This document shows, piece after piece, positions 7,640 through 59,464 of a stretch of 64,000 bases of DNA. This DNA comes from Octopus sinensis (taxonomy: Eukaryota): contig NC_043011.1 of assembly GCF_006345805.1 (NCBI RefSeq), positions 65,670,464 to 65,734,463 of the forward strand. The letters are read 5' to 3'. Position 1 is the first letter of the stretch; each line of letters opens with the position of its first letter. The notes below the pieces were generated by a model, which did not search any database, was not told where the DNA came from, and saw only the letters and a list, made by a program, of their open reading frames with translations. The position numbers and the translations under genes are program-made.

Positions 7640-8760
7640 TGTTACGCACAAACATTCAGCAGAACTGTCAGGTTTTCAAGGAGTTCGTATTGTTCGTCAT
7701 TTTGAGACTGGTCTTAGCCATTAAAAAATTGCCGAAAATCTTCAAAATGCTCTTTCGAATGTTAATAGTGTTATAGTGCAAATCAAAAGCCAAAGAGAAG
7801 AATCAACTTATTTTCGTCCCGGCCAAATCTAGGCACTCGGAATGGATGATTCAGTGTTTGAAGACAATTGTGGCAAATGAACCCCTTTCGAAGGCTTCTG
7901 ACAGTACAAAAAAACCTAGAAGTTACTCCAAGAGAATGTGTGTTACATATCTGCATAAGCTTAAGTATTATGGACGAATATCTAGAAGAAAACCTCCACT
8001 TCAAACAATTAATATTATAAAAGAAATGAAATGGGCTAAGGATATGTCAGAGAAATTCAGTTAATTTTGGGTTAGACTGATTTTCTCAGATGAATCCAGA
8101 TTTGAATTACTTTCAGACAGTGGACGTGTTTGGGTCTGGATGTTTTCCAATCAAGAATTCGATTTTAAACGACTCCAACTAACTGTGAAACATGACGGTA
8201 GCTCTGTAATCGTATGTGGAGCTATCACCAGCAATGGTCGTTCTGAGATGGTCGGATGTGTTGGAACTATTAACACTGAAAAATACATCGAAATATTAAG
8301 CAACGACTACTTCCGATTTATTCAAACGATTGCACAAAGGAAAATGAACTTTTATTAATGAAATATTCGGCTCCACGAAGCAGAGCGGAAAGGAATCATC
8401 AATGGGTGACTGAAAATAGGTTCGGAAAGCTTCCTTGGCCGAGCCAATCTCCTGACATGAACCCAATTGAAAATCTCTGGAGCATACTAGATAGAGCTAT
8501 ACGAAAACACAAAGGAATCCTAAATCTAAAGATGAATTGTTTCGATTGCTGCGTGAAAAGTGGATAGAAATTCCACACGAGACAAGCCCAAAGATCATCA
8601 GTTCAATGGCCAAAAGAGTTTCTGAATTAAAAACTGCAAAATGTATGTCAACTAAATACTAAAGTATGTCGTCCTATCTATCGACTACATTGCAATTGTT
8701 CGCTTTGCGTACAAAAGTAAAGATTCTGAAAATTAAGGATGTCGATTTGCTTCCTGCATA
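7640..8760 (+). mobile_element. Degenerate Tc1-like transposon in G1 intron 4
   Basis: IFSDESRFEL, HDGSSVIVCGAI and WPSQSPDMNPIENLW motifs in broken frames. Confidence 0.9.
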
Positions 8761-8867: not shown

Positions 8868-9020
8868 AATTTATATATACATATACATTTTTGTTGGAGA
8901 GAGTTCGCTACAGTGCCATGTATAAGGAGAGCTGATAGACGAATGTTTCATTTTCTTTAAGACAAGTTAAATATTTATGCATAATCGAAGAAATATTTGG
9001 AGGAAGAATAAAATGCTTAC

Positions 9021-9108
9021 CTGGTAGCAACCGCTATGCTTCTTGAAAGCGTCATGGCATTGCCAGCTGATATCTTCAGTTAAACATGCCAACAAGTCTT
9101 TGAAACCA
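9021..9108 (-). CDS. G1 exon 4 (88 nt): GFKDLLACLTEDISWQCHDAFKKHSGCYQ
   Basis: Acceptor aaattttcag, donor gtaagc, one open frame (phase 2 to 0), three Cys conserved in paralogs. Confidence 0.85.
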
Positions 9109-9603
9109 CTGAAAATTTAAAGCGAAGCTTTCAAATTTCATTTACGATATGATCACTTAAGACGATTCAATAATTTATCTATAAAATCTAATGAGAACGT
9201 AAGCATTCACATCAACACTAATCTCCATACGTCTCCAGCGGAACTAATGTTACATAGTCGTAGCTATGATCAAACATCTGAAATATGTGAATATCCTATA
9301 TCGCACAAGTGAATTAATTTACCTACTGTGTACAAACTGTAAAGATAAATGCTAAAGCGAAAAGTGTAATAGCTCCTAAAAGAGTTTGATATATAAGGCA
9401 AGTAAATGTCAATTATATCTAATACGTGTGTTATTAATTTATAACGACCATCAGTTTCGGAATCATTTCCTACACATTATTACTTGCAGACAAGCATATA
9501 TGGTTTATATTATATTATATTATAAAATGTTATCATATGTCTGTGTGTGTGTGTAAATGTGCATGTGTGTGCGCACCTATACGTGTGTTATATCATTATG
9601 TGT

Positions 9604-9641
<38 letters not shown>

Positions 9642-9643
<2 letters not shown>

Positions 9644-9921
9644 GGAAATAAAGAAAAAGCTGACAAAATAATTTAAGTAATTTAAGTAATTTAATTAGGT
9701 GAAGTTATTTTTACCGGTTGCGCATTTGTTATGCTTATCAAAAGTTTTATTTTTTAAGAGAGATACAGTTCCCTTCTGATAATTGTTTTTCCTCTTTCCT
9801 CAGAAAGGAAATCTATCTCTCTTGATAAGCATAATAAATGCGCAACCGTTAAAAAGGACTTCACCTAATTAAATTACTTAAATTACTTAAATTTTTTCGT
9901 CAGCATTTTCTTTATTTACTT
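9642..9921. mobile_element. Foldback/MITE-like element with ~100-bp inverted arms next to a (TA)n tract
   Basis: 9642-9741 is the near-perfect reverse complement of 9822-9921. Confidence 0.8.
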
Positions 9922-9963
9922 TTTTTATATATCACAACTCGTGTTCCACTTCTCCTTTTTTAA

Positions 9964-10011
<48 letters not shown>

Positions 10012-10359
10012 TGACAGGAAATTAAGCGAATAATGAAATTAGGAACATCAAGTATATGCTATTCATTAAATACATCAACTAAAATATATGTATATATCTA
10101 TATATACAACCAGAGAAAAAGCAAGAGTTGAAAGTTTGAGATGATGAAAATGGTACCTGTAAATATAGAGATATTTTATTAAGTATTCCAAAGTACAGAG
10201 ACTAGAAATAAGAGCGGAAATTAAAGGAGTTTAAGAAAGAGGTAACAAGTCAAACCTCTGTTTCTAGGTTGTTGGGAATGCACATTAAGGAGACATGTAA
10301 TTCCTCTAAATATGGTGCAGTATGAATGCAATTAACATTGCATTGAGTAGAAAAGAAAC

Positions 10360-10575
10360 TTTTCTACTCAAGGCGGAAGACCTGAATATTTTGGGAAGGG
10401 GCCATTCGATTAGCCCGACCCCAGTTCAAAACTGCCACTTATCCTAACGGGCCCGAATAGATGAAAGGCAAAGTCTACCTTGGGGAAACTAGAATTCAGA
10501 ACGTAGCGACGGGCGGCGAAATACTGCTAAGAAATTCGCCGACGTGCTCACTATTTTGCCAGCTTGCCTCCTGCG
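10360..10575 (-). mobile_element. tRNA-derived SINE, degenerate; paralog ~35995-36205
   Basis: Minus strand reads ggcaagctggcaaaatagtgagcacg...ctacgttctgaattc, resembling octopus SINE heads (from recall). Confidence 0.7.
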
Positions 10576-11387
10576 TAGAATTTCAAACAATGAATGATTG
10601 CTGTTATCTCAGGGCTTAGCGCGCGATTTTCAAGCTAATCACAGTATTTGTGAGGAGGTTTATCGACGTTGTTGTATTTGGATATTTTGATATTCAAAGC
10701 GATCTTATTCATTCTGTTAGCATTAATATTATTGCTAGCAAAAGATGCATTATTGGTGTCACTACGCATTTCATACACCGGATCGACCTATACAATATAC
10801 CATAGACTGGCCTTTTTTTTTACCCGTATGATGAAACATACATAAGTAGTTCAAAATTATTGAATCACCTTAAAATTCCCATTTCGCATATTCTCTGTCC
10901 TTTAAATATCTAAATGCATTTGATACAGAGAAATGCAGAAAGATAAGTATGTAAGTATGCATGTAAATGTGTACGTATATATGTAGGTATGTATGTATGT
11001 AGGTAGGTAGGTAGTTAGAAAAGCAGGTAGTTAGGTAGGTCAGTAGGTAATTAAATAATTTATGTATAGATAAATATACAGATAGATATATATACATATA
11101 TAAATATACAAACAGTTTGCAAGATTAGACAGACAAATAGGCAAATTGATAGATAAGTCTATCTATAAGTCTATAGATAGACTTATAGGATTATAAGTAT
11201 ATTGATATATAGGTTGATAGAAATATTGATCGAGAGGCGGCTAAGTAGAAAGATAGATAAATACAGGCAGAGATTGAAAGATCGTTGGACGTTTAATGGG
11301 TGTAGGTAGTTACAGTAATAGATAGAAAGACAGAGACAGATAGGTTGATAAATATATAAATATGTTGACAGATCGATAGTGATGTAC

Positions 11388-11455
<68 letters not shown>

Positions 11456-11486
11456 ATATATGTGTATACACACACACGCATAAATT

Positions 11487-11525
<39 letters not shown>

Positions 11526-11687
11526 AGGGAGAGAGAGAGATTGATGAATAAATAGATAAATAGATAAATAGTTGGATAGGGTATAGATATGTAGTGTAAT
11601 AGAGAGATTGTTTAGATAGATTTACCGTTATATTTATCATTTTGTAATAAGTTTGTCTATGTATCTTAGAAATAATAAATATCATAC

Positions 11688-11793
11688 GCGCAACCTCTTG
11701 ACCCGTAGCCCTTGGTATATCTTAATTGCTCAGGACATGCATATCTCGCAAAACGATTGCATACTCCCCAAATGTCACATTCGGATGCTGCGT
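11688..11793 (-). CDS. G1 exon 3 (106 nt): AASECDIWGVCNRFARYACPEQLRYTKGYGSRGC
   Basis: Acceptor tttttcactttctag, donor gtatga, open frame phase 1 to 2, compatible with exons 2 and 4. Confidence 0.85.
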
Positions 11794-11900
11794 CTAGAAA
11801 GTGAAAAAGAAATATTTCTTTTTATAGCGTATAGGCCAACATCAAAACTTTTTAGAAACCTATTAGGAAATAAAATTTACAAAATGTCATTACTTGTGAA

Positions 11901-13240
11901 AGGAGTTGCTGTTGGTAAGTACCTTGCTAACTTTCGTCTGAGTCAGACGTGGTTTTTGGAGCTGCTTCAGATGTCACGTGTTAACGTGAAATATTGAATT
12001 TTGAGACTCGACTAAAGCTAGGAGTTTTGTATTTTTGCGGGCGAAGTGAAGTTTTATTGCTTGCATTAATGTTTTTTAGCATTTAATATTTTTCAGCAGA
12101 TAATAAAACTCCACTTTGCCCCAGATATAATTTCTCTGCCTTTTGTCGAGTGTAAAGAGAATTATATTTTTAAAGCGGCGTAGTCCGTCTGCAAAAAAAA
12201 GTTTGTTTTTGAAATTATCTTTGTGTTATCCACGGTAATTACCAAGGAGTACCAAGGATTATTTTACCAAGGGGTTTTACCAACTGTGCATTTGGCCTGG
12301 AATACAACTTTTTGTCCGAAATAATTGAAAAAAAAAAAAAGAAAAAAAAAATTAATTCCTTTGCCTGGATTTGAACTCTTTTTCTCCGTCTATCATTTAT
12401 ATTTAAAAAAAACAGAACTTTTTGTTGAACTGCTATTTCTAATTTTATTTCTTCCCTTCTGTTGCATTTTTTATTCTCCTTTCTGTGTCTTACTATATTT
12501 TTCACATTTTGAACTGTTTTTTCTTACGTTATGGCAAAGAGTTTCACTGTGTGGGAATTGACACCTCCCAAAAAATATGTGAACGAACTCGAGGAAAGGA
12601 CCGTGGTGCTGAGGACATATTCGAAGTCTCTCGACACCATAATGGTTTTTCCGAAAGACACTATTATTAACGAGCTGGCAGACTATATGCCAGCCATTAA
12701 ACACATTCAACGGGGAGCCAAATACGCAACGATTTGGTTGCTGTTTGACTCCCCAAAGCAGCTTGCGATTTCGCAAGCAAGCCCATTGAGGGCGAAGAGA
12801 TTTTGTTTCTCCCAAGCTACAAGGGAGAAAAATTATTAAGAAATATTATTGAAATAAAGTAGCTTGCTAACCAACCACATGGTTCCGGGTTCAGTCCCAC
12901 TGCGTGGCATCTTGGGCAAGTGTCTTCTGCTATAGCCTTGGGCCGACCAATGCCTTGTGAGTGGATTTGGTAGGCGGAAACTGAAAGAAGCCTGTCGTAT
13001 ATATGTATATATATATATGTATGTGTGTGTGCTTCTGTGTCTGTGTTTGTCACCCTAGCATTGCTTGACAACCGATGCTGGTGTGTTTACGTCCCCGTCA
13101 TTTAGCGGTTCGGCAAAAAAGACCGATAGAATAAGTACTGGGCTTACAAAGAATAAGTCCCGGGTCGATTTGCTCGACTAACGGCGGTGCTCCAGCATGG
13201 CCGCAGTCAAATGACTGAAACAAGTAAAAGAGTAAAAGAG
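11901..13240 (+). mobile_element. tRNA-derived SINE split in two (head 11901-11931, body 12857-13240 with AGTAAAAG tail) in G1 intron 2
   Basis: A-box-like ggagttgctgttggt and B-box ggttcagtccc. Empty site in unit B at ~37510-37530 (gtgaaagttactatttc). Confidence 0.85.
11932..12856 (+). mobile_element. Internally deleted ORF1-only (gag-like) retroelement inside the SINE
   Basis: ORF from ATG 12531 is homologous to the one at 57945. 15-bp TSD at 11917-11931 and 12857-12871. Confidence 0.75.
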
Positions 13241-15995: not shown

Positions 15996-16032
15996 GGGAT
16001 ATGAGAAGTGCAACAAAAATGAGTATCTTCAT
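15996..16032 (-). CDS. G1 exon 2 coding part: signal peptide MKILIFVALLIS (exon 16043-15996)
   Basis: Acceptor cattttacag, ATG at 16032, basic residue then hydrophobic run, donor gtgagt, phase 1. Confidence 0.85.
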
Positions 16033-19044: not shown

Positions 19045-19800
19045 CATTTAGCTATGTATGTACCTATGCGTCTATATATATAGGTCGTCTGCTGCTGGAG
19101 AGGACCGACCAGGTAAAGGACCTTTGCATCTTAGTGGAGTTTTCCTTTTCGCCTTCGGGTCAATGCGTCTAAGTTAACAACAAATCACGCGGAGTTCTGT
19201 TCTTGATTCGACGGTCATTCGGAATTCTTAGAGCAGCCTATTCCTACCGCTCCATGTCACGCTGGTGAGACCCATAATGGAGTACGGGATTTAAGCCTCT
19301 TCTCCTTATCTCTTCAAAGACATACAGCAACTTGAAAGAGTCCAGAAGCTGGGTACCTGCATGGTTATTGGTCTCAAGCATTTGTCTTATGAAGAAAGAC
19401 TGAAGACGCTCGACCTTCATTCTCTAGAAAAACGACGACGCCGTGGTGATCTCATTCTTGCTCACAACATCATAAGCGGAAAGTGTAACCTCTCGAAAGA
19501 GCTGTTCTTCACTCCTGCTCCAGAGCGTCGACTGCGGGGTCACTCCGAAATGCTCTATCTGCGACGAATTCATTTCAATCGAAGGAGAGGGTCTTTCTCC
19601 GTCCGTGTTGCGGATCCGCGGAATAAGCTGCCGAACGAGATAGCGAAGATGACGACGATCGCTCGTTTCAAAGTCTCCCTTGACCACCAGTGGCCTGAAC
19701 TCTTTACATGAACACCACACTGTACATGACTCGATGTCCCCCTACATGGCCATGCTTTTTGCTTTTTGAGCCAAATAATTAACTAACTAACTAACTAACA
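19045..19800 (+). mobile_element. CR1-like LINE 3' fragment with (ACTA)n tail; paralog ~41680-42431
   Basis: VKDLGILVD and YEERLKTLDLHSLEKRRRRGDLI motifs. Confidence 0.9.
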
Positions 19801-24793: not shown

Positions 24794-24896
24794 ACGCAAT
24801 TTTTTCTGCTGGATATGTACTAACGATATTGAGTGTTACATCTTTGTTTACCTATACCTTGGCACTCTATCAAAGTGAGCGATGAGGTTGCAGCAT
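24794..24896 (-). pseudogene. G2 exon 3: AATSSLTLIECQGIGKQRCNTQYR*YISSRKNC; no downstream exons found
   Basis: Same splice sites as G1 and G3. In-frame TAG at 24822-24820 where G3 has CAG. Confidence 0.8.
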
Positions 24897-27294: not shown

Positions 27295-27333
27295 AGATAT
27301 GAGAAGAGCAATAAAGATAGATATACTTAGCAT
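27295..27333 (-). pseudogene. G2 exon 2: signal peptide MLSISIFIALLIS (ends phase 0)
   Basis: Acceptor tattttacag, donor gtaagt, homologous to G1 exon 2. Confidence 0.75.
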
Positions 27334-30300
27334 GGCTTTTCCTGTAAAATACTAATTCCGACTATGTATGTTTCACTTCCTCGTTTGTTTGTCTCTCCTC
27401 AATTCACTTCCTCCTTATCTTAAATGATGCAATATAATGTTACAGGTGTTTTATTCAGAGTGCACAGTCTTTCTAACCGTTTTGTATTTTTATATATGTT
27501 GCACAATATTTGACGGTTGTACGGTTTATGTGAGATTGTACCATATTCAGAATTGATTTGCTTTCGATGTATGGTCATGCTAAATCTAAATGTAATAGCG
27601 CTGAGCTAGTATGAATGCTATTTCATAGGTACTTCGTAAATTCATACTAAACAGAATATTCCATAGCTTCGCTTTTCGCATCTGCATATTAAAACACATT
27701 AGTCAAAAATTTATCGAGAGAATAATTGTTAGAAATGAACGCGAAATTTTTATAAAATATTAATTGTTCTGATCATGATAATGATGATGATGATGACGAT
27801 GATAATGATGATGGTTGTGATACAGTCGACGGTTGTGATACAGACATTCACCGATCATCTATTCAGGAATAGGATTTCAGATTAATCATGTCTGTGTAAC
27901 ACTCTGATGGTCATCCCTTTTCTGTTGTTCCTCGCTTGAATATCTCAACCAAACTAAATCATGAGTAATATAAATGGTTAGTCTATCCAAGGCCTAGCAT
28001 CGCTTCTGTCATTGCTTCGTTTTCTATCATTCGTGTCGATCACCATGGACTGTATGGCACCTAACATTATTATTATGATGCTTACGGCATACGAAAACAC
28101 AGACCTCTCATCGTTCTTCTCTTGGAATGCTTGTCGATATCTCTGGCTGCTGCAGTGGTAGCTCTTCATTCATTACCAACCAAACAGATGTTAGCATTCA
28201 TATTTAGTAGAGAGACCGCATGATACTGAGAGTTTCGGTCAGGTGGCCATTAAATCTGACCAATTAGCGAACGTGAGAGCAAAATCAACCAATTAAACCG
28301 AGGTTTTTAGAATTCTGAACGAACTCTACTACCACAATTGATTCATTAGTTTACAGAATCTTTCTGGATATTCACATTACTCTTTGCCCATAGTTATAGT
28401 GGCGCATTTGGGAAATTATATCGGTACATGACAGCTAATTGGTAAACATATGAGTGATTTTTCAAGGGAATTTATAACCTCTTGAAGCTGGTTTAAAATG
28501 ATGGAGAAGTTGAGCCAGTAAGCAGTAAGGTTTCCTAATCGACTGGTAAAAATAAAGTAGCGCGAGATACTCAGGAAGGATACAAATCACCTGGGGAATT
28601 CCAGCTGTCTCACCTCAGGTGGACTTACATGGTATGTAAACTTCAGGCATCGACATTCGCTCGTATTGACATTTAGTTTTATTAAATTTAATTCCACGTC
28701 TAGAAAGACCATCAGTGTTTTATGAGAGTCCGAAACGACATCGCACTGCGAACGTGATTATGCATCCATATATGTATATAGAGACTTTAAAATAAACACA
28801 TATATGTGCCCGTGTGTGTGTGTATGCGTGTATGAATAAGTGTTTGTGTGTGTTTGTGCCTGTGTGTGTCTGAAATCCTAGTGTATCTGGTAGCAATCAG
28901 TTCTAAATGTAGCGACCAGAAGCCACTGAGCAACCCTCATTGGATTCAAGCTCGCACAATGCCATTATTTGATAAATGCATTATAGTTGTTGAAAGATAA
29001 AGAGGAGAAAAGTAAACCAGATGCCAAAACGGAGTGTCGGAGAGAGTTTCATTCGGCATCCATTGATTTACGGTACACATTGAGGACAGCATTTAGGAGC
29101 TTACAGTTTATGCTCAGAACACTTACACAATTGGATGTACGGTATTCCAGTCTCATTTATTTGAAAATTTGAAACCTAGAAAGGGCTGACCTCAGGAAAA
29201 CTTCCAATAAATTTGTCCCCCCTTTTTCCTCTAAGGATATCAGAATATATTGTTGTCCCCTTTAATAACAAGCAATTTCGTGATAGTGTGTTTTTATTTA
29301 TTGAAGCTATTTTATTTTGATAGTAGTCTGCTGTGTTTGTTTTCTTTTGGCTGAGGTTAGTGTAGTCGGAAGTGGAGGAGTTGCGAATTTTCCTGTTTTT
29401 CATATTGTACGGTGTGCTGTAGTTGAGGCTGACATAATTGTGTTGCTCCAAAAAACTGTTATTGATTTGCCCTGTTATTTTTGTTTTGTTTTGACAAGTG
29501 TGTGTGTCGTGCATGCTGCTGCTGTATGCTCGGTAGTTGGGGTTGGAATTGGCCTTTGCCTTGCTGCTCTTTTCTCAGCTTCCTCTACTTGCTACTTTCC
29601 ATTTCTACTTTGCATCACTTTCCGTTGAGATCTTTTCGGGCTACGGCCTATTTCCTCCAACATTTTGATGAGAATACAAACTGTTCCAAGTTTACTAAAA
29701 GATACGTTTCTACACTCATTTACATTATTTACATTCGACGGATATTTGTCCTCATCTTGTTTGTTGTTATCACAACGTTTCGGCTGATATACCTTCCAGC
29801 CTGTTGTAAACCGTAGCTATTTGAGTAATTGAGAAAATCTCCACGTTCTGGTGACATGTCTTACATCTACCCACATATATTCTAGAGCAAGATCCAGCTA
29901 GGCCTCAGTTGCTGCTAGGGGTGCGGTTTTTACATGCCCAAAATAGCCATCGTCTTCCTAGTTATAACAAAAATCTAGGATTGAGTGGCAACTTGCATTG
30001 TCCTCACCGTTGCATAAATAAATTTCTTCGCTTGTGTTAAGTTTCTTCGTTGCTAATTAGAGACAGTGTGAGGTAATTCGTTGTTTTCGCCACCAGCTTA
30101 ATTATTTGTTCTCTGAAGTGTCTCTCCTACCACTAATATTGCCGTTATTTAAACCTTTGTGGCCACTGTAGTTTTCCCTGATGACAATGTTTGTGTATGT
30201 GCCCGTTTATGTGTGTCCGTGTACGTAGGTTTGTGTGTATGATACTGTGTATATATGTATGTATAGATGCGTGAGTGTGTGTGTACAACAGAATTATTTG

Positions 30301-32259: not shown

Positions 32260-33365
32260 TCAGCAGAACTGCCAGGTTTTCAAGGAGTTCGTATTATTCG
32301 TCAATTTGAGACTGGTCTTAGCCAGCAAACAATTGCCGAAAATCTTCAAAATGCTCTTTCGTATGTTAATAGTTTTATAGCGCAAATCAAAAGCCAAAGA
32401 GAAGAATCAACTTATTTTCGTCCCGGCCAAATCTAGGCACTCGGAATGGATGATTCAGTGTTTGAAGACAATTGTGGCAAATGAACCCCTTTCGAAGGCT
32501 TCTGACAGTACAAAAAAACCTAGAAGTTACTCCAAGAGAATGTGTGTTACATATCTGCATAAGCTAAAGTATTATTGACGAGTATCTAGAAGAAACCCTC
32601 CCCTTCAAACAATTAATATCAAGAAAGAAATGAAATGGGCTCAGGATATGTCAGAGAAATCCTGTTAATTTTGGGTTAGACTGATTTTCTCAGATGAATC
32701 CAGATTTGCATTATTCTCAGACAGTGGACGTGTTTGGGTCTGGATGTTTTCCAATCAAGAATTCGATTATTAAAACGACTCCAACCAACTGTGAAACATG
32801 GCGGTAGCTCTGTAATGGTATGTGGAGCTGTCACCAGCAATGGTCGTTCTGAGATGGTCGAATGTATTGGAACCATAAACACTGAAAAATACATTGAAAT
32901 ATTCAGCAACGGCTACTTCCGATTTATTCAAACGATTGCACAAAGGAAAATGAATTTTTATTAATGAAATATTCGGCTCCATGAAGCAGAGCGGAAAGGA
33001 ATCATCAATGGATGACTGAAAATAGGATCGGAAAGCTTCCTTGGCCGGGCCAATCTCCTGACATGAACCCAATGGAAAATCCCTGGAGCATACTAGATAG
33101 AGCTATACGAAATCGTAAAGGAATCCTAAATCTAAAGATGAATTGTTTCGATTGCTGCGTGAAAAGTGGATAGAAATTCCACAAGAGACAAGCCCAAAGA
33201 TCATCAGTTCAATGGCCAAAAGAGTTTCTGAATTAAAAACTGCAAAATGTATGTCAACTAAATACTAAAGTATGTCGTCCTATCTATCGACTACATTGCA
33301 ATTGTTCGCTTTGCGTATAAAAGCTTAGATTTTGAAAATTAAGGATGTCGATTTGCTTCCTGCAT
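32260..33365 (+). mobile_element. Tc1-like transposon, paralog in G3 intron 4
   Basis: Same motifs as 7640-8760. Confidence 0.9.
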
Positions 33366-33486: not shown

Positions 33487-33916
33487 TATACATTATAGTT
33501 GGAGAGAATTCCCTACAGTGCCCCTAACTGTGGAGGAGAAGCGTGTCTATAATATATGTAGAATATAACCGATATATGAGTGTTAAATAATGAAATTCAG
33601 ACCACTTCCACGTCCATCGAATGGAATGATAATCTGCAACATGCATTTCATGATTTCAGCAACAAATGTTTTGCTAAAACTTCGCAATGATCATTGGAGT
33701 TATATTGAAACTCGTTAGAAATTGTTTGAAACCATCTATGTTATGTACTTTGCAATTAAATAGCATATTACATATTTCGTATTGTTATTTCATTTTTTGC
33801 AGACAAAAGATATTTTACTATCATCGTCTGATAGACGAACGTTTCTCTTTGTTTAAGACCAGTTTCAAATTTATGCATAATCGAAGAAATATTTATAGGA
33901 AGAATAAGAAACTTAC

Positions 33917-34004
33917 GTGGAAGCACCAGTGATTCTTCTTGAAGCGCCTATAGCATTGGCGTTCGACATCAGAAGTGAAACATGACAAGAGGTCTTTGTA
34001 ACCA
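33917..34004 (-). CDS. G3 exon 4: GYKDLLSCFTSDVERQCYRRFKKNHWCFH
   Basis: 88 nt, AG/GT (gtaagt), open frame, Cys spacing kept. Confidence 0.85.
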
Positions 34005-34477
34005 CTGAAAATTTAAAGCGAAGCTTTCAAATTTCATTTACGATATGATCACTTAAGACGATTCAATAATTTATCTATAAAATCTAATGAGAACGTAAGC
34101 ATTCACATCAACACTAATCTCCATACGTCTCAAGCGGAACTAATGTTACATAGTCGTAGCTATGATCAAACATCTGAAATATGTGAATATCCTATATCGC
34201 ACAAGTGAATTAATTTACCTACTGTGTACAGACAGTAAAGATAAATGCTAAAGCGAAAAGTGTAATAGCTCCTAAAAGAGTTTGATATATAAGGCAAGTA
34301 AATGTCAATTATATCTAATACGTGTGTTATTAATTTATAACGACCATCAGTTTCGGAATCATTTCCTACACATTATTACTTGCAAACAAGCATATATGGT
34401 TTATATTATATTATATTATAAAATGTTATCATATGTATGTGCCTGTGTGTAAATATGCATGTGTGTGCGCACCTGTA

Positions 34478-35080
34478 CGTGTGCTAAATCTCTCCCCTCA
34501 CCCTCATCTCACCTCCCTCCTCCTCCCCTCTTCCCCTCATCTCCTATCTCCCCCATCTCTCTTCCCTCCTCCACTTCTCCCTCTCTATTCTCTCCCCCTT
34601 TCACTCTCCCCACAACCCCCACTCTGCCCCAACCCCCAGCCGAACCCACAACCTACATGGGCTTTTCCCAACTCCTACCACACTACACTACACCATACGA
34701 CATTACACATCACGTCATACATACATACACACGTCCAGACCTTTCATACGCACATACATACTCTCTCATACACATAAGATCACTTATGTTGATTCGAGGT
34801 CATTTCCCCTTGTTATCTCCCCTACTATCCGTCTTGCGTCTAACGTCTGATCTCTAACTTCTGGCCGAAATCAGACCGCCATGTTAAATCGTTAGCTCCT
34901 GCATGTATTTTTTCTCCTTGTTTCTCGCCGTGTTTCTTTTCTGTGTATCTTTCTGTCGAAGAGCGTAGGCTCGAAACGTATAAGACTTGTTTTATTTCTA
35001 TTCCTGAGCACCATACTAATACAATTGTTTGTTTGTACTCCACCTGCCTTCGTCTTTTGTTTATTTTCGTAAGCTTCCCG

Positions 35081-35082
<2 letters not shown>
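34478..35082 (+). mobile_element. C-rich low-complexity tract plus Penelope pLTR-like end, unit B only
   Basis: ctgtcgaagagcgtaggctcgaaacgt motif; absent in unit A at ~9590. Confidence 0.55.
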
Positions 35083-35145
<63 letters not shown>

Positions 35146-35227
35146 GTAAATAGGGTATTAAAAATAAATTATTATTAACAGTGACCTAGCACAAAAGATG
35201 AATAGGTCATTAGACAATACGTTATCC

Positions 35228-35591
35228 ATATATAAATACATTAAAAGGCTTCCAAATAAAGAAGCGAGTGCAAGATACACAAAAAGGGGATAAATTCATG
35301 AAAAGGAATGAAAATCAAAAACGTTTACCAAACCAGCAAATCCTGTACTGCGGTTTCGACTTTTTTTTAGCAAATGAATAGAATTTATCTGGCAAGGCCA
35401 GAATCATAAAGGCTTCCTGCTGATGATTCTCGCCTTGGCAGATAGATTCTATTAATTTTCTCAAAAAAAGATGAAACTGCAATACAGGATTTGCTGGTTT
35501 GGTAAACGTTTTTGATTTTCATTCCTTTTCATGAATTCATCCCATTTTTGTGTATCTTGCACTCGCTTCTTTATTTGGAAGCCTTTTAATG

Positions 35592-35600
<9 letters not shown>
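35228..35600. repeat. Long palindrome with ~180-bp arms and a 15-nt spacer in G3 intron 3
   Basis: 35228-35407 is the near-perfect reverse complement of 35423-35600. Confidence 0.9.
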
Positions 35601-37137: not shown

Positions 37138-37309
37138 TGAGAGAGAAAGAGAGATATTGATAGATAAATAGATAAATAGATGGATATGGTATATGGGAGA
37201 TAGATATGTGTAGTAATAGAGAGATTGATAAATAGATTTGCTGTTATATTTATCATTACCTATTTTGTAATAACTTTGTGTACGTATCTTAGAAATAATA
37301 AATATCTAC

Positions 37310-37412
37310 CCACAATCTCTCCTGCTGGATATGTACTGGCTATATTCAACATAACATCTTTGTTTACCTAAACGTTGGCATTCTCTCCAGCTGAGCGATG
37401 AGGTTGCAGCAT
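37310..37412 (-). CDS. G3 exon 3 (103 nt): AATSSLSWRECQRLGKQRCYVEYSQYISSRRDC
   Basis: Same acceptor as G1, donor gtagat (weaker), open frame phase 1 to 2. Confidence 0.8.
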
Positions 37413-39089: not shown

Positions 39090-39126
39090 GGGATATGAGA
39101 AGTGCAATAAAAATGAGTATCTTCAT
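39090..39126 (-). CDS. G3 exon 2: signal peptide MKILIFIALLIS
   Basis: As G1 exon 2, one codon different. Confidence 0.85.
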
Positions 39127-42100
39127 AATGCCGTTTCCTGTAAAATGCTTGTTCTTATGGTGTATGGTTCACTTCTTTTTTAGTATCCTCACTTCCCTTC
39201 CTCGTTACTTCATCTTATATTTTGCAATTTAATGTAACAGATGGTTTAGTCAGAGTGTAGTTTCAACATCTTTGTGATTAACGTTCTATATTTGACGCTT
39301 GTATAATATATCTGAGAATTTATTAATTTCAGTATTGATTTGCTTTCTTTGTGGCCGTCATGCTAAGGCTAATTTAATGGAGCTGTGCTAGTATGGAACC
39401 TACATCATATATTCCTCTTAAAATTATAGTGAACATGATATTCCAGTGTTTGAAACTTTCAATCTGCATAAGTCTTTCGTTAATTATATTCAGTGAGAAT
39501 ATTATATATTGAATTAATATTGAGTGCTCAATTGTATCAAAGTATTGATGCTATTAAAGTATTTATATAATTAATACGAGCGAGTATATATACATATATA
39601 TTTGTTAATAATATATTAATATAAGTAGTATTAAGAAATCAATATCAAAACACATCAGAAAGATATACATGTGTGAAAAAAATGATTGTTGTATTAAAGA
39701 TATATTAATAAATGTAAATATGTATACAAATATATGTAAATACGAATAAATAAAATTATATAACGTATATTACAGTGTACAAGTTTTGAATTAATTATTT
39801 AAATCACTTTACGATCGTTTAACATTAGAATTTTCCCTATAATGAACTCCTATAGTGATAAGCATTTATAGACAACGCTTCTGCTCTTCAGAGATATAAA
39901 ATTAGAATTGCGTATAACATATCGAATGATAGATTTTTTTTTTTTTATAATTTGAAGTAAATGTATAAAATATTATTTGTTTGAATGATAAATTAACAAT
40001 TAAAAATTACTGCTTTTGATGAGATTCTTTAAATCCATATATACTTCCTTGGTTATTCTTCTGCAATAATCCATAATATTCATATTTAAAATACGTCATA
40101 TAAAATCCTTTGACAAAGAGAGACAACTTCTTAGCCGAAACAAAAATCCAGAGGAACACCCAAACTTTCAGACTGGGACCGTCGGACACATGAGAAAGGA
40201 TCACAAATTCACAACAACCAAAAATATTGTAGATCTTAATGAACGACCCCAGAACCGAGTTTTTACAAAATCTCTTCACCAGGAGCTGCATAAAATCAGA
40301 TTTCATGGGAGGGCTGCAATCTAAAAACCACTACTTTCATAAAAAAACGTTGCAAAGCGTTTTTTAATGGTGTGAAATCCTACAGAATTGGTCCCTAGAG
40401 AAGAGAAACAATGTTTTTTTCCGGACGAGGCATCATTTAATATACTTCCAAAGACCGGCAAATTATACGACTGAAAGGAGCCAGAAGAAGCTTTTGACGC
40501 AGACTGCCTCCTTTCAACTGTTATAAATGGAGGAGGAAACATGATGATATTGTTGGGTGGGCGCTATATATTGCAAATTCGCCGGCTCAGTGGTTTCACG
40601 TCATGGCAGAATTAATAATTACGACTATTTAAGCATTTTATCTTATTAATATCAACCAATGTTTGCGAAAATGTTCCTGGAGAGAAACGAAATAATTCAG
40701 GGTGATAATGCACCATTTCACACAGTTAAAGTTGTTACTGAATGGCACGAGGGACATTCTAGTGAAGGTAAACAACTTATTCGGTGTCTTCAGGTTTTAG
40801 ACCTCAATAATATTGAACATTTAGGGTGCATTTTAGATAAACAATTAATGGGTCGATGTCATCCACCGTTATCAATAGAAGATTTGAAGAATATTTTAGT
40901 TGAAGAATACATAATAATTCCTTAGTAAACACTTAAAACTCCGTACGAGTCCACACAATTTAAGGTGTAATTACTGCCAAAGTTGGCACTACCTCATCTT
41001 CAAATAACTGTGTTTGAAATTATGAGGTGTTTCCATTATTTTTGTCAAAGCCTGTATATATATATATGCATATATGTGTGTGCGAATATATATATATATA
41101 CATTTGTGAGTGTGGATGAGTATATATATACATAAATAAATATCTGTGTATGTATATGCATATATATATTCATCTATCTATCACTCTTTATATGTATATA
41201 TATGTCTGTGTGTGTATGTGTGTGATAGAGACAGACAGAGAGAGTGCATATACAACCATACATACATACACTCATGTGTATATAGGTAGTTAGGTATGTA
41301 TGTTCCTGTGTGTGTACGTACATTTTTATATGAAACAGGAAAATATTTCTTTAAATATATGAGTCTATATAAGAAAAATCATTTTGTTGCAAACTATTTT
41401 GCAGGCTAAATTATTGAGATTGAATAGAGAACGACTTAATAACGTACAAACACATATGTTACGCTGTATTTGCTTATTTAAGATAGAACAATATTCCAAG
41501 AGCATTTAAATTTGTCTCCATCGAATTTATTGCCCAGCACTCCGATGGAGTTCTCACAATTTATTTTCCTAGTCACTTTAGATAAAGATTTAATCATATT
41601 CTTTTAATTTTCATTGTTCATTATTTTCTGTTTCGACATAATTTAGTAAATCAAAGTATCATCCATAACTTTATATTTCTATGACATTTAGCTATGTATG
41701 TACCTATGCGTCTATATATATAGGTCGTCTGCTGCTGGAGAGGACCGACCAGGTAAAGGACCTGGGTATCTTGGTGGATTCTTACTTTTCGCCTTCGGCC
41801 CAATGCGTCCGAACTGCCAAGAAATTACGCGATCTGTTCTTGATTCAACGGCCATTCGGAATGCTCACAGCAGCCTATTCCTACCGCTCTGTGTCATCTG
41901 GTGTGGCCCATATTGGAGGGCGGGATTCAAGCCTCTTCTCCTTATCTCCTCAAAGACATACAACATCTTGAAAAGCCCAGAAGCTGGCTACCCGCATGGT
42001 TATTGGTCTCAAGTATTTGTCTTATGAAGAAAGACTGAAGACGCTCGACCTTCATTCTCTAGAAAAACGACGACGCCGTGGTGATCTCATTCTTGCTCAT

Positions 42101-47469: not shown

Positions 47470-47572
47470 ACGCAATTTTTTCTGCTGGATATGTACTAAC
47501 GATATTGAGTATTACATCTTTGTTTACCTATACCTTGGCACTCTATCAAAGTGAGCGATGAGGTTGCAGCAT
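47470..47572 (-). pseudogene. G4 exon 3, with the same TAG (47498-47496) as G2
   Basis: Near-identical to 24794-24896. Confidence 0.8.
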
Positions 47573-49956: not shown

Positions 49957-50479
49957 GGCTTTTCCTGTAAAATACTAATTCCGACTATGTATGTTTCACT
50001 TCCTCGTTTGTTTGTCTCTCCTCAATTCACTTCCTCCTTTTCTTAAATGATGGAATATAATGTTACAGGTGTTTTATTCAGAGTGCACAGTCTTTCTAAC
50101 CGTTTTGTATTTTTATATATATTGCACAATATTTGACGATTGTACGGTTTATGTGAGATTGTACCAGATTCAGTATTGATTTGCTTTCGATGTATGGCCA
50201 TGCTAAATCTAAATGTAATAGGGCTGAGCTAGTATGAATGCTATTTCATAGGTACTTCGTAAATTCATACTGAACAGAATATTCCATAGCTTCGCTTTTC
50301 GCATTCGGAATATTAAAACACATTAGTCAAAAATTAATCGAGAGAATAATTGTTAGAAATGAACGCGAAATTTTTATAAAATATTAATTGTTATAATCAT
50401 GATAATGATGATGATGTTAATAATAATAATAATAATATTAACAATAATATTGATAATAATAATAATAATAATAATAATG

Positions 50480-50527
<48 letters not shown>

Positions 50528-50606
50528 GTAATAATTATAATAATAATAATAATAGTAATAATTATAATAATGATAATAACAATAATAATAATAATAATAA
50601 TAATAA

Positions 50607-50637
<31 letters not shown>

Positions 50638-52360
50638 AAGAAGAAGAAGCAGACGAAGAAGAAGAAGATGAAGAAGAAGAAGAAGATGAAGAAGAAGAAA
50701 AACAACAACAACAATAACAATAATAACATCGAAAATACATTAGGAATGTAAACCCACGTTCAAATTTTCACCGCCACTCCTTATGACGGCTGGAGGTTAT
50801 ATAACAAGATTAAGACAAATATCTGTGAAATGTAAATAATGTATATGAGATCTGGCTGGAAAACAAAATTGGGTAGTAGGAGTAAATACAAGCCCTCTTT
50901 CACTTGTGTAGAGATATTATTATGGCGATTGTCGTTCCTTAATACTTTCAGTTCGTTTGTTTCGAATCTTTCACCTTTGAGTTAATTTAAATATATTCGC
51001 TTTGATGGTGTTACTAGCTTTAAAGTGCAGGTGTAGGCGAAATTGAAGATTATACTTAGGTTTCGCTCATGCCGATTACTATTCATCCTGCTTGAGCATT
51101 TTAAACAAGGCTGATCACGAGCCGAAACCAATGTGATATCCGTTTAGCAGTTGATGATGGGGATACATATACGTTATGCATGTTTTCTCGATCCTATATC
51201 TTCTCCACCATTACTCCTCTATATCACACCATGATGAAACACTCACTAACCGCATGGGTGAAAGGGGTTGTGAGAACCTGTCTGCACTGAAGAAACCATG
51301 ATGAAAGGCGTAATATGCGCTTGATCCACATCTGAGTCTCGCTGAAAGGGACGTATTTTGGTCTGGCATGAAGTGAAGTAGGGAACGACAGACAGGTGGG
51401 AGTAGTCGACGGTTGTGATACAGACATTCACCGATCATCTATTCAGGAATAGGATTTCAGATTAATCATGTCTGTGTAACACTCTGATGGTCATCCCTTT
51501 TCTGTTGTTCCTCGCTTGAATATCTCGACCAAACTAAATCATGAGTAATATAAATGGTTAGTCTATCCAAGGCCTAGCATCGCTCCTGTCATTGCTTCGT
51601 TTTCTATCATTCGTCTCGATCACCATGGACTGTATGGCACCTAGCGTTATTATTATGATGCTTACGGCATACGAAAACACAGACCTCTCATCGTTCTTCT
51701 CTTGGAATGCTTGTCGATATCTCTGGCTGCTGCAGTGGTAGCTCTTCATTCATTACCAACCAAACAGATGTTAGCATTCATATTTAGTAGAGAGACCGCA
51801 TGATACTGAGAGTTTCGGTCAGGTGGCCATTAAATCTGACCAATTAGCGAATACGACGGCACAATCAACCAGTTAAACCGAGGTTTTTAGAATTCTGAAT
51901 CAACTCTACTACCACAATTGATTCATTAGTTTACAGAATCTCTCTGGATATTCACATTACTCTTTGCCCATAGTTATAGTGGCGCATTTGGGAAATCATG
52001 TCGGTACATGACAGCTACTTGGTAAACATATGAGTGATTTTTCAAGGGAATTTATAACCTCTTGAAGCTGGTTTAAAATGATGGAGAAGTTAAGCCAGTA
52101 AGCAGTAAGGTTTCCTAATCGACTGGTAAAAATAAAGTAGCGCGAGATACTCAGGAAGGATACCAATCACCTGGGGAATTCCAGCTGTCTCACCTCAGGT
52201 GGACTTACATGGTATGTAAACTTTAGGCATCGACATTCACTCGTATTGACATTTAGTTTCATTAAATTTAATTCCACCTCGAGAAAGACCATCGGTGTCC
52301 CATGAGAGTCCGAAACGACATCTCACTTCGAACGTGATTATGCATCCATATATATATATA

Positions 52361-55959: not shown

Positions 55960-57070
55960 GTTACGCACAAACATTCAGCAGAACTGTCAGGTTTTCAAGG
56001 AGTTCGTATTGTTCGTCATTTTGAGACTGGTCTTAGCCATTAAAAAATTGCCGAAAATCTTCAAAATGCTCTTTCGAATGTTAATAGTGTTATAGTGCAA
56101 ATCAAAAGCCAAAGAGAAGAATCAACTTATTTTCGTCCCGGTCAAATCTAGGCACTCGGAATGGATGATTCAGTGTTTGAAGACAATTGTGGCAAATGAA
56201 CCCCTTTCGAAGGCTTCTGACAGTACAAAAAAACCTAGAAGTTACTCCAAGAGAATGTGTGTTACATATCTCTTTAAGTATTATGGACGAATATCTAGAA
56301 GAAAACCTCCCCTTCAAACAATTAATATCAAGAAAGAAATGAAATGTGCTAAGGATATGTCAGAGAAATCCAGTTAATTTTGGGTTAGACTGATTTTCTC
56401 AGATGATTCCAGATTTGAATTACTTTCAGACAGTGGACGTGTTTGGGTCTGGATGTTTTCCAATCAAGAATTCGATTTTAAACGACTCCAACTAACTGTG
56501 AAACATGGCGGTAGCTCTGTAATGGTATGTGGAGCTGTCACCAGCAATGGTCGTTCTGAGATGGTCGAATGTATTGGAACCATAAACACTGAAAAATACA
56601 TCGAAATATTAAGCAACGACTACTTCCGATTTATTCAAACGATTGCACAAAGGAAAATGAATTTTTATTAATGAAAGATTCGGCTCCACGAAGCAGAGCG
56701 GAAAGGAATCATCAATGGGTGACTGAAAATAGGTTCGGAAAGCTTCCTTGGCCGAGCCAATCTCCTGACATGAACCCAATTGAAAATCTCATGGAGCATA
56801 CTAGATAGAGCTATACGAAAACACAAAGGAATCCTAAATCTAAAGATGAATTGTTTCGATTGCTGCGTGAAAAGTGGATAGAAATTCCACACGAGACAAG
56901 CCCAAAGATCATCAGTTCAATGGCCAAAAGAGTTTCTGAATTAAAAACTGCAAAATGTATGTCAACTAAATACTAAAATATGTCGTCCTATCTATCGACT
57001 ACATTGCAATTGTTCGCTTTGCGTACAAAAGTAAAGATTCTGAAAATTAAGGATGTCGATTTGCTTCCTG
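55960..57070 (+). mobile_element. Tc1-like transposon, paralog in G5 intron 4
   Basis: Same motifs as 7640-8760. Confidence 0.9.
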
Positions 57071-57364: not shown

Positions 57365-57452
57365 CTGGTAGCAACCGCTATGCTTTTTGAAAGCGTCATG
57401 GCATTGCCAGCTGATATCTCTAGTTAAACATGCCAACAAGTCTTTGAAACCA
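57365..57452 (-). CDS. G5 exon 4: GFKDLLACLTRDISWQCHDAFKKHSGCYQ (gene lacks exon 3)
   Basis: One amino acid different from G1 exon 4. Confidence 0.75.
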
Positions 57453-57905
57453 CTGAAAATTTAAAGCGAAGCTTTCAAATTTCATTTACGATATGATCAC
57501 TTAAGACGATTCAATAATTTATCTATAAAATCTAATGAGAACGTAAGCATTCACATCAACACTAATCTCCATACGTCTCAAGCGGAACTAATGTTACATA
57601 GTCGTAGCTATGATCAAACATCTGAAATATGTGAATATCCTATATCGCACAAGTGAATTAATTTACCTACTGTGTACAAACAGTAAAGATAAATGCTAAA
57701 GCGAAAAGTGTAATAGCTCCTAAAAGAGTTTGATATATAAGGCAAGTAAATGTCAATTATATCTAATACGTGTGTTATTAATTTATAACGACCATCAGTT
57801 TCGGAATCAATTCCTACACATTATTACTTGCAGACAAGCATATATGGTTTATATTATATTATATTATAAAATGTTATCATATGTCTCTGTGTGTGTGTAA
57901 ATGTG

Positions 57906-59464
57906 TTTTTCCTATTCGAACTTTATTTACATTTTTTGTTAAAAATGGCAAAGGAACTGATTGTTTGGGAGCTAGAAGATCCCAAAAAATATGTCAAACA
58001 GCTCGAGGATAAGACCGTGGTACTGAGGACTTATTCAAGGTCGCTCAACGCTATCATGGTTTTTCCGAAGGCGAAAATTATTGAAGAGCTGGCAGACCAC
58101 ATGCCAGCCGTAAAATATATCCAACGGGGAGCCAAATACGCAACGGTTTGGTTGCTGTTTGACTCCCCAAAAGATGCTTGCGAGTTTGCAAGCAGGCCCA
58201 TTGAGGGCAAATAAATCTTGTTTCTCCCTAGTTACAAGGGAGAAAAATTGACAAGACTGTGGGTCTGCGGCCTGCCACCCGACATTGAACCCGAGTGGAT
58301 AGAACACTCTATCCGCTTGGGTCTGGGTGACAGGGACGCAAAAATCGTAAATGTCAATGTACAGCCTGCGGCTTATTGGGAGGGGTCTAAGGCAAACTTA
58401 ACCCTATGGACCCAGTCAGCCATAAGTCTGGTTTTACCGGACTTTTTGAGAATGGCCGGGTCCAAGTATCCGGTGATGCTTGAGGGAGCCCCCTCAAGTG
58501 TCACCTGTGTTTGGAGACCGGCCACATCAAGAAGAGCTGCACCAGGGACCAGAGTAGCATCCTGGAGCGGCTGATATTGGAGCCTCTCCCTGCCTCCTCA
58601 ATGGAGGGATAGAGGCAAAGTGAGGAGGGGGAAAAATCCTCCTCCAAAGAAAGAGAAAGGTGGGGAGCAATGGCGACCCACCAAAGGACCTGAAAGCTCC
58701 GGGAGAGGAGAACCCGGTGTGTACAGCTCCGGAAACTCAGCCTCCTGTGGAAAAGGAAAAAAAAGAGAAACGGAGCCCCGCCGGCAGATTGCTACACGCA
58801 GACGGCGGTTCCCGAGTATCCCGGGTCCTCTCAGGCGGGTGTGCCGCCTGAGGGACAATTCGTGGTAGATTTTGTGCTCCTCATTTACAAAGGAAAAAAG
58901 GTGGAAAGCACCGTAAGAAAAGTGAGAAAGAGAGGACATTGGGAGGTAATCCGGTCCTGTGTGGAAAACCCCGAGTGGCCTTCGCAGATAGCTGCGGGTG
59001 TCGTGGGAAGGGGTGATCTACACAGGATCGTGGGTTCCTGCCCGGCGGACTCCTTCCAGACTATACCATTGGACACCGGCCTGACCAACGAGTATTGCCT
59101 CAATGAGGCAAGAGCAATGGTCGGCCGGGTCACATAGGCGCTGTAACATCTTTGTAACATGTGGAAGAGGAGGCTTATTGCCTCCTCTAAAATTTGTAAA
59201 AATTTGTAAAAATTGTAATTCAATGTTAAGTTAAACATTTTGCAACAGGTTGAAGGGGTGGTTTATTGCCTCCTCTAAAATTTGTAATTTGTAATCATTG
59301 TAGTAAATGTAATTATTGAACATTGTTTTAGAGAAGCAAGAGTCGGCGGGCGCTTTTTGACTTCTCCCATCACCATATTCATCCACCACCACCATCATCC
59401 ATTAATGTCTTTGTCCAGCCCGTAGCTACTCTGTGTGCTGCCCTAGTGGCAAATTATTGAAATA
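57906..59464 (+). mobile_element. ORF1-only retroelement: gag-like ORF (57945 to ~59137, with a nonsense codon and frameshifts), CCHC knuckle, ~320-nt 3' UTR ending in AATAAA, no RT
   Basis: CHLCLETGHIKKSC (CX2CX4HX4C) at 58499-58540 after a 1-nt frameshift; in-frame TAA at 58212-58214. Confidence 0.8.

Follow-up and report, generated by a model that had tools for sequence, protein, structure and literature searches.

Mammalian beta-defensin clusters evolve by tandem birth and death, with a conserved signal exon, a fast-diverging exon that encodes the cationic, cysteine-rich mature peptide, and many pseudogenes. Accelerated evolution of exons was reportedly described by Nakashima and colleagues (1993-1995) in crotaline PLA2 genes, and Doley and colleagues (2008-2009) are said to have introduced the term ASSET (accelerated segment switch in exons to alter targeting) for snake three-finger toxin genes. 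In the conotoxin A superfamily, introns that are 98-99% identical within a species surround different mature toxins, Dn and Ds are both raised in the mature exon, and simple repeats abound in the introns (PMC3862624). Below we set beside these systems a small cysteine-rich gene of an octopus, found in a tandem array.

The window (the whole 64,000-nt stretch of DNA that was analysed) has approximately 34% G+C and is rich in microsatellites and LINE fragments. Self-comparison reveals a unit of about 22-24 kb in three tandem copies: unit 1 at 2442-27792, unit 2 at 27824-50416, and unit 3 from 50519 to the window end. In background sequence, units 1 and 2 differ by 3.9%, units 2 and 3 by 3.5%, and units 1 and 3 by only 1.8%, which makes units 1 and 3 sisters. 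The unit junctions (50399-50740 and 27718-27810) consist of long trinucleotide runs of the ATT/ATC and AGG types, readable as open reading frames of poly-Ile and then poly-Arg; the array may have arisen by unequal crossing-over at such runs. Two transposon features deserve mention in passing. Positions 2-1783 hold a LINE reverse-transcriptase fragment (RVT_1, zf-RVT), the closest database relatives of which are 60-70% identical and include one from the coral Oculina patagonica. Within a CR1-like retrotransposon remnant of units 1 and 2 (19088-19356 versus 41728-41990) there is an island of roughly 15-20% divergence, almost identical on both sides; it contains many CpG-type transitions, which suggests either decay of methylated CpG sites or conversion by other copies of the element. 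A search of Rfam gave no match.

Five copies of the gene can be recognized in the window, which we label G1 to G5 in order of position. The coding exons of the three copies with an undamaged start exon are as follows (here and below, a slash within a sequence marks a border):

15996-16032, minus strand: G1 first coding exon, comprising ATG, 12 signal-peptide codons (MKILIFVALLIS) and one further base; donor C/GTGAGT, phase 1
11688-11793, minus strand: G1 second coding exon, 106 nt, 4 Cys; it completes the signal peptide (H-A-A) and encodes the first half of the mature protein
9021-9108, minus strand: G1 third coding exon, 88 nt; GFKDLLACLTEDISWQCHDAFKKHSGCYQ; 3 Cys
39090-39126, minus strand: G3 first coding exon, MKILIFIALLIS, one conservative amino acid different from G1
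37310-37412, minus strand: G3 second coding exon, 103 nt; AATSSLSWRECQRLGKQRCYVEYSQYISSRRDCG; 79% protein identity to Octopus bimaculoides XP_052830539.1; donor weakened, GG/GTAGAT
33917-34004, minus strand: G3 third coding exon; GYKDLLSCFTSDVERQCYRRFKKNHWCFH; 65% identity to XP_052830539.1
62674-62710, minus strand: G5 first coding exon, in unit 3, the sister of the unit that holds G1
57365-57452, minus strand: G5 third coding exon, G1-type, with 3 nt that differ from the G1 exon

The start exon is present in all five copies, with an ATG at 16032, 39126 and 62710 and in degenerate form at 27333 and 49956; a TATAAAT motif precedes the ATG by about 90 nt, and divergence of this signal exon between G1 and G3 is at the background level. 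Its join to the second coding exon is in frame, the split codon (C+AC or C+AT) specifying His and giving ...LLISHA/A, a typical signal-peptide end. A search for a middle coding exon between the two found no in-phase candidate conserved among the copies. The second coding exon of G1 is bordered by an acceptor TTTCTAG/ (AG at 11795-11794) with a pyrimidine tract before it and by a donor GC/GTATGA (GT at 11687-11686), and a single open frame runs across 11793-11688 on the minus strand (AASECDIWGVCNRFARYACPEQLRYTKGYGSRGC). A preliminary description of this DNA had called 11793-11688 exon 3; it is the second coding exon, since it follows the signal exon (16032-15996) with no exon between them, an arrangement that the O. 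bimaculoides homologue shares. We also considered that it might be the last exon, with read-through to ...CAYDIYYF*, and rejected this model, as the O. bimaculoides protein shows a donor and a further exon at this point. For the 3' end of the gene, we note a candidate terminal exon, KLFWPLN* with acceptor TTTTTAATTCAG/, at 8600-8621, 33206-33227 and 56914-56935 (minus strand); it is identical in G1, G3 and G5 and followed by AATAAA or ATTAAA some 240-275 nt downstream, but is one of several candidates, none of them decisive. Across the three exons seen, G1 has no stops, frameshifts or lost splice sites, and on this reading of the sequence it looks like the only fully intact copy in the window.

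A profile built from the exon translations of the window retrieves one protein, XP_052830539.1 (LOC128249941 isoform X2, uncharacterized, Octopus bimaculoides), with E=5e-11; in an exhaustive profile search it was the only real match among 1.84 billion representatives. Its sequence, MIRILILIAILISHAATSEFTWKECQGLGKQRCYYQYSQYISSRRDCG/GYKDFLKCF..., confirms the join of exons 1 and 2 and the internal position of the second exon, and a tblastn search with it located the third exons of G1, G3 and G5. Over the mature part, G3 is identical to the O. bimaculoides protein at 46 of 62 residues and G1 at 21-23 of 62 (39% in the third exon of G1). G3 and the O. bimaculoides protein have the same signal peptide, the same junction after it (...ILISHAATS...), the same exon joins, the same cysteine framework (C-x7-C-x13-C-x8-C-x8-C-x9-C, identical in the two) and the same net charge of +6, versus +1 in G1. 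The spacing in G1 is 7-14-8-8-9: the six scaffold cysteines are kept, the second loop is one residue longer, and an extra, seventh cysteine is present. The C-terminal 35 residues of XP_052830539.1 found no counterpart in the window.

Other searches returned little. Word-indexed protein searches, run with an early read-through model of G1 and with a three-sequence alignment, gave no match; Pfam gave no family at E<=10 save a noise hit to DUF753, and the PDB sequence search gave none. An AlphaFold2 model of the O. bimaculoides protein is all-helical with a pLDDT of 52, too poor for a fold search. Literature searches for the peptide sequences, for LOC128249941/XP_052830539.1 and for a tandem family of cysteine-rich octopus proteins brought up nothing relevant. 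Judging from the signal peptide in the model, the gene appears to encode a small, putatively secreted six-cysteine protein of a lineage-restricted, unnamed octopod family; the window DNA itself also reads as octopod, because the sole database relative of this protein, XP_052830539.1, comes from O. bimaculoides.

The second coding exon, in which the translations begin AASECDIWGVCNRFARYAC... in G1 and AATSSLSWRECQRLGKQRC... in G3, departs sharply from its surroundings. As the preliminary description had reported, the two copies share only 6 of their first 19 residues (A, A, W, C, R, C), the exons differ in length by one codon (106 nt in G1 versus 103 nt in G3), and the intron upstream of the acceptor differs at just 2 of 108 positions (106/108 identical). 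Over the whole exon, 8 of 33 residues are common. At the nucleotide level, 43 of 99 aligned bases differ in the exon versus the 2 of 108 in the intron (Fisher p=1.7e-14). To call the exons nearly unalignable, as had been done, was nevertheless an overstatement: they are 57% identical with a single 3-nt indel, and the alignment score (z about 6) was reached by none of 2000 shuffles. The alignable upstream intron ends at 108 nt because G1 carries an insertion that has no counterpart in G3:

11794-11902, minus strand: 3' end of intron 1 in G1; 106 of 108 positions match G3, and identity to the relic copies G2 and G4 is about 82%
11903-13240, no strand: 1.34 kb insertion in G1 intron 1, absent from G3 (junction 37521/37526); part of it common to unit 3

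On the other side of the exon, a divergent shoulder consists mostly of microsatellite, and its changes split evenly between G1 and G3, so we make no claim for it.

The same contrast recurs in the third coding exon, where 28 of 87 bases differ between G1 and G3, none of the 122 bases of intron upstream differ, and similarity resumes past the exon. Those 122 nt are identical in G1, G3 and G5. The third exons of G1 and G5 differ at only 3 of 87 positions, one of the changes, GAA to AGA, involving two adjacent bases. In a scan of the unit 1/unit 2 alignment (approximately 18 kb), the second and third coding exons are the only divergence islands outside repeats and transposons. Three observations on the surrounding introns may be added. 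In the 89 nt just downstream of the third exon (8932-9020), G1 differs from G3 by about 15% and from G5 by 3%; this shoulder ends at an indel of about 300 nt in G3 (33522-33828) and makes the border the sole exon border that is not sharp. The low divergence of the intron adjoining the third exon (1% over 400 nt) is matched by 6% of 400-nt windows, and we therefore claim no conservation there. The second intron of G3 contains about 1.1 kb (34490-35594) absent from that of G1; part of this is a strongly C/T-skewed, low-complexity stretch with a GC skew of -0.20 that reads as proline- and serine-rich open reading frames (34433-34857).

With G2 as outgroup, 35 of the second-exon differences are specific to G1 and 4 to G3. 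The flanks of G2 and G4 are approximately 80-83% identical to those of both G1 and G3; in the second exon, they differ from G3 by 19%, the same as in the flanks (about 18-20%), and from G1 by 50%. G1 is thus the derived copy, given the 35 versus 4 polarized changes and the greater closeness of G3 to the O. bimaculoides protein. The timing follows from the third exon. G1 and G5 share the rewritten version, so that the change dates from the interval in which their lineage had already separated from unit 2 but units 1 and 3 had not yet parted; since then they have accumulated 3 differences in 87 positions versus the approximately 13 predicted by a constant rate (p=0.001). The rewriting of the exons was thus a short episode that occupied roughly 1% of neutral divergence, and the rate slowed afterwards.

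The 71 substitutions (43 + 28) have left G1 with an open frame, with its exon phases and AG acceptors intact and with each of the six scaffold cysteines in place. When substitutions are placed at random at the observed density, 0.11% of trials for the second exon and 1.0% for the third preserve an open frame together with three Cys codons, for a joint chance of retention of about 1e-5 (0.001 x 0.01), and the changes in the third exon are packed into 16 of its 29 codons (p=0.007). This retention, the packing of the changes and the drop in charge favour a selected change of function over decay. The opposing view, that G1 is a dying duplicate the exons of which are simply drifting, would fit the fact that three of the five copies are relics, as well as the 1.34 kb insertion in intron 1 of G1. 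Neutral decay, however, would not stop at exon borders, nor would exons decay 10-20 times as fast as the introns beside them, and it would not be expected to keep frame, phases and six cysteines; moreover, the true relics G2 and G4 have diverged from G3 to the same extent in exon and flanks. We consider decay of G1 very improbable.

The broken copies themselves are informative as to the turnover of the family. Second-exon copies in the window are limited to G1, G3 (37412-37310), G2 and G4, with none in unit 3, and the third exons of G2 and G4 were not found in the window. The damaged features are:

24794-24896, minus strand: G2 relic of the second exon, G3-like, 81% identical at the nucleotide level, with an in-frame TAG at 24822-24820
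47470-47572, minus strand: G4 relic of the second exon, a duplicate of G2 that arose with the duplication of the large unit, 1 nt different in the exon
27333-27295 (G2) and 49956-49918 (G4), minus strand: degenerate copies of exon 1, in which a 1-nt deletion shifts the phase
57906-59452, no strand: foreign segment in unit 3, about 1.5 kb and GC-rich (48%), at the expected place of the G5 second exon

G5 has no second exon because this GC-rich segment occupies its place, and a direct join of exons 1 and 3 in G5 would be out of frame. The segment stands where unit 1 has 9562-12844, the stretch that includes the second exon of G1. Its open reading frames have no Pfam match, and one frame, at 57891-58214, has 84% DNA similarity to the frame at 12531-12839 inside the G1 intron insertion. 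The segment is probably a retroelement-associated rearrangement that killed G5. G3 has an intact frame, but its second-exon donor (37306-37312) is one base short, GTATGA as in G1, G2 and G4 having become GTAGAT with loss of the G at +5; if this donor is unused, a TAG stop follows immediately, and G3 may then give a truncated, three-cysteine product. Stops, frameshifts or lost splice sites thus mark G2, G4 and G5 and are absent from G1. The argument of the preliminary description that frame and splice sites survive in both copies, and hence speak for function over decay, therefore holds for G1 (frame, phases, acceptors and six cysteines), is strengthened by the confinement of the divergence within exon borders and by the annotated homologue in O. 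bimaculoides, and is undercut by the weakened donor of G3 and by the broken state of three of the five copies. Frequent frame disruption among paralogs, which it had named as the observation that would count against it, is indeed seen in part of the family, in those same copies G2, G4 and G5. Taken as a whole, the pattern of intact, weakened and dead copies indicates that the family is in birth-and-death turnover.

What drove the rewriting has to be judged from the substitutions themselves. For G1 versus G3, dN/dS is 0.75/0.34 (2.2) in the second exon and 0.44/0.32 (1.4) in the third, values that come from only 15-20 synonymous sites per exon and in which dS itself is raised; dN is about 10-30 times the intron divergence. 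The rise in synonymous change is also apparent within the 23 codons of conserved residues, which carry 5 synonymous nucleotide changes in 11.8 synonymous sites versus 0.46 expected at the intron rate (p about 1e-4), with 2 of the 5 in the first 5 bases of the exon. Exon changes comprise 22 transitions and 49 transversions, compared with a background transition fraction of 0.45 (p=0.017). A deaminase or RNA-editing signature is ruled out, the changes being transversion-rich. With synonymous sites approximately tenfold above the introns, ordinary mutation plus selection is probably insufficient, and exon-segment replacement or a raised local mutation rate probably contributed beside point mutation. 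Selection on point mutations, the model implicit in the preliminary description, leaves this synonymous divergence unaccounted for.

Our leading reading, which we hold tentatively and with slightly more doubt than belief, is that of diversifying (positive) selection acting in place after duplication. The unit was duplicated recently, with flanks now 2-4% diverged; both mature-protein exons were then rewritten in one short burst on the lineage to G1 and G5, with the signal exon, introns, frame, acceptors and six scaffold cysteines retained throughout. In this reading, diversifying selection would have re-targeted a secreted ligand or effector. In its favour are the confinement of divergence to two exons with natural borders at the splice sites, a signal exon at background, the derived state of G1, the single burst shared with G5, the constraint on frame and cysteines, an apparent excess of dN over dS, and the shift in charge from +6 to +1 along with the gain of a seventh cysteine; the conotoxin A superfamily offers a precedent (PMC3862624). 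It sits less well with several features of the data: it leaves the synonymous excess unexplained, the changes are transversion-rich, a dN/K(intron) of 10-30 over whole exons exceeds what positive selection in place usually gives, the donor of G3 is weakened, and three of five copies are relics. Whereas the gene model, the divergence in two exons, its polarity and episodic timing and the retention of the scaffold are observed, we infer the role of selection as driver, the production and secretion of the protein, and the source of the variation.

If the variation was imported, the exons of G1 and G5 would have been overwritten from an older, diverged paralogue outside the window, either through non-allelic gene conversion over short tracts or through segment switching of the ASSET kind; the exon sequence would then be much older than its flanks, and selection would only have kept the outcome. 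The dS of the exons, about 0.3-0.4, greatly exceeds the divergence of the introns on either side and is near the distance between G3 and G2 (dS 0.39, with flanks at about 0.2), which is what such an origin predicts, as are a transition:transversion ratio near the 1:2 of long-diverged sequence and a single episode rather than a steady process. Tracts of about 100-200 nt are normal for conversion, and the shoulder of approximately 89 nt and 15% past the third exon ends at an indel, as if the tract had entered the intron. Yet there is no donor within the window and no G1-like protein in the databases searched, and of the four tract ends, three would need to lie almost exactly (to a few bases) at exon borders even though the introns of the family diverge (82% for G2/G4). 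Two separate events would be needed, given that the 2.5 kb of intron separating the exons show no change, and in our reading of the alignment the shoulder of the second exon is split evenly between G1-specific and G3-specific changes. We regard import as unlikely, although it merits serious consideration.

A second possible source of variation is focal hypermutation, in which a process targeted to the mature exons (a mutator polymerase or an RNA-templated process, as proposed for conopeptides) supplied changes that selection then filtered. We know of no animal in which such a mechanism has been demonstrated outside immune genes. It would explain at one stroke the rise at both synonymous and non-synonymous sites, the transversion bias, the sparing of Cys codons and the sharp splice-site borders in two exons, and Dn and Ds are likewise both raised in the mature exon of conotoxins (PMC3862624). 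Such a process must, however, have stopped after the split of G1 and G5 (3/87), was not ongoing in the sister copy G3, which has only 4 specific changes, and left a spectrum without a deaminase-like signature; we consider it improbable. Should an exon-targeted supply of variation exist in octopods, in the form of either segment switching or transcript-guided hypermutation, it could have rewritten the two exons together with their synonymous sites in about 1% of neutral time and spared both the 2.5 kb intron and the splice-adjacent intron bases, a conjecture that we would entertain only as a long shot.

A further alternative concerns the units themselves, which might in part be uncollapsed haplotypes or very old alleles, the G1/G5 and G3 types having been kept by balancing selection while recombination homogenized the flanks. 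Identity of 96-98% between units over more than 20 kb is compatible with this, and narrow peaks of divergence at selected sites, with exon dS far above intron divergence, are predicted by long-term balancing selection. We give this possibility no more credence than we give focal hypermutation. Kilobase-scale indels separate the units, each of which has its own G2-type relic in order, as fits real tandem copies; a divergence of 3.9% is high for haplotypes; and a recent duplication is a far simpler explanation than the homogenization of 22 kb of noncoding DNA, transposons included, everywhere except in two exons.

If in-place diversification is right, the locus would provide a clean case of the re-targeting of a secreted cysteine-scaffold protein after duplication, complete with a sister (G5), a conservative copy (G3), dead outgroups (G2 and G4) and an annotated relative. 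The contrast is extreme, with exon divergence of 32-43% versus 0-2% in the adjacent introns, and with introns 96-100% identical overall. The synonymous divergence also bears on a long-standing question posed by conotoxin and snake-toxin genes, that of whether "accelerated evolution" is the work of selection alone or of a special supply of variation. The octopod protein family is, putatively, a candidate venom, immune, chemosensory or reproductive ligand.

Compared with the conotoxins, the octopus gene shows the same conserved signal, near-identical introns rich in simple repeats, hypervariable mature exons on a cysteine framework with both dN and dS raised, and phase-1 first intron. Conotoxin precursors consist of signal, propeptide and mature toxin, the toxin being encoded by the last exon; the octopus gene differs in belonging to a cephalopod rather than a gastropod, in having no propeptide exon, and in a mature chain of more than 60 residues spread over at least two exons, both hypervariable, with a further exon after them; neither Pfam nor the PDB sequence search assigned it to a conotoxin superfamily. 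With ASSET and the crotaline PLA2 genes it has in common that exon segments differ drastically between recent duplicates with near-identical introns while the cysteine scaffold is kept; the snake segments of ASSET, however, are short, unalignable surface loops, whereas those of the octopus are whole, alignable exons, and taxon and fold are unrelated. The beta-defensins have no sequence relation to it, their contrast is few-fold compared with 10-20-fold over about 1-2% of neutral time, and G1 has lost the cationic charge. The mode of evolution, with signal and introns conserved around hypervariable exons, is already known, and by its sequence and architecture the octopus gene is a member of none of the families compared. 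New are the family, the taxon, the extension over two exons and a contrast as sharp as 10-20-fold, reached in about 1% of neutral time, a pattern previously undescribed for the LOC128249941-like family.
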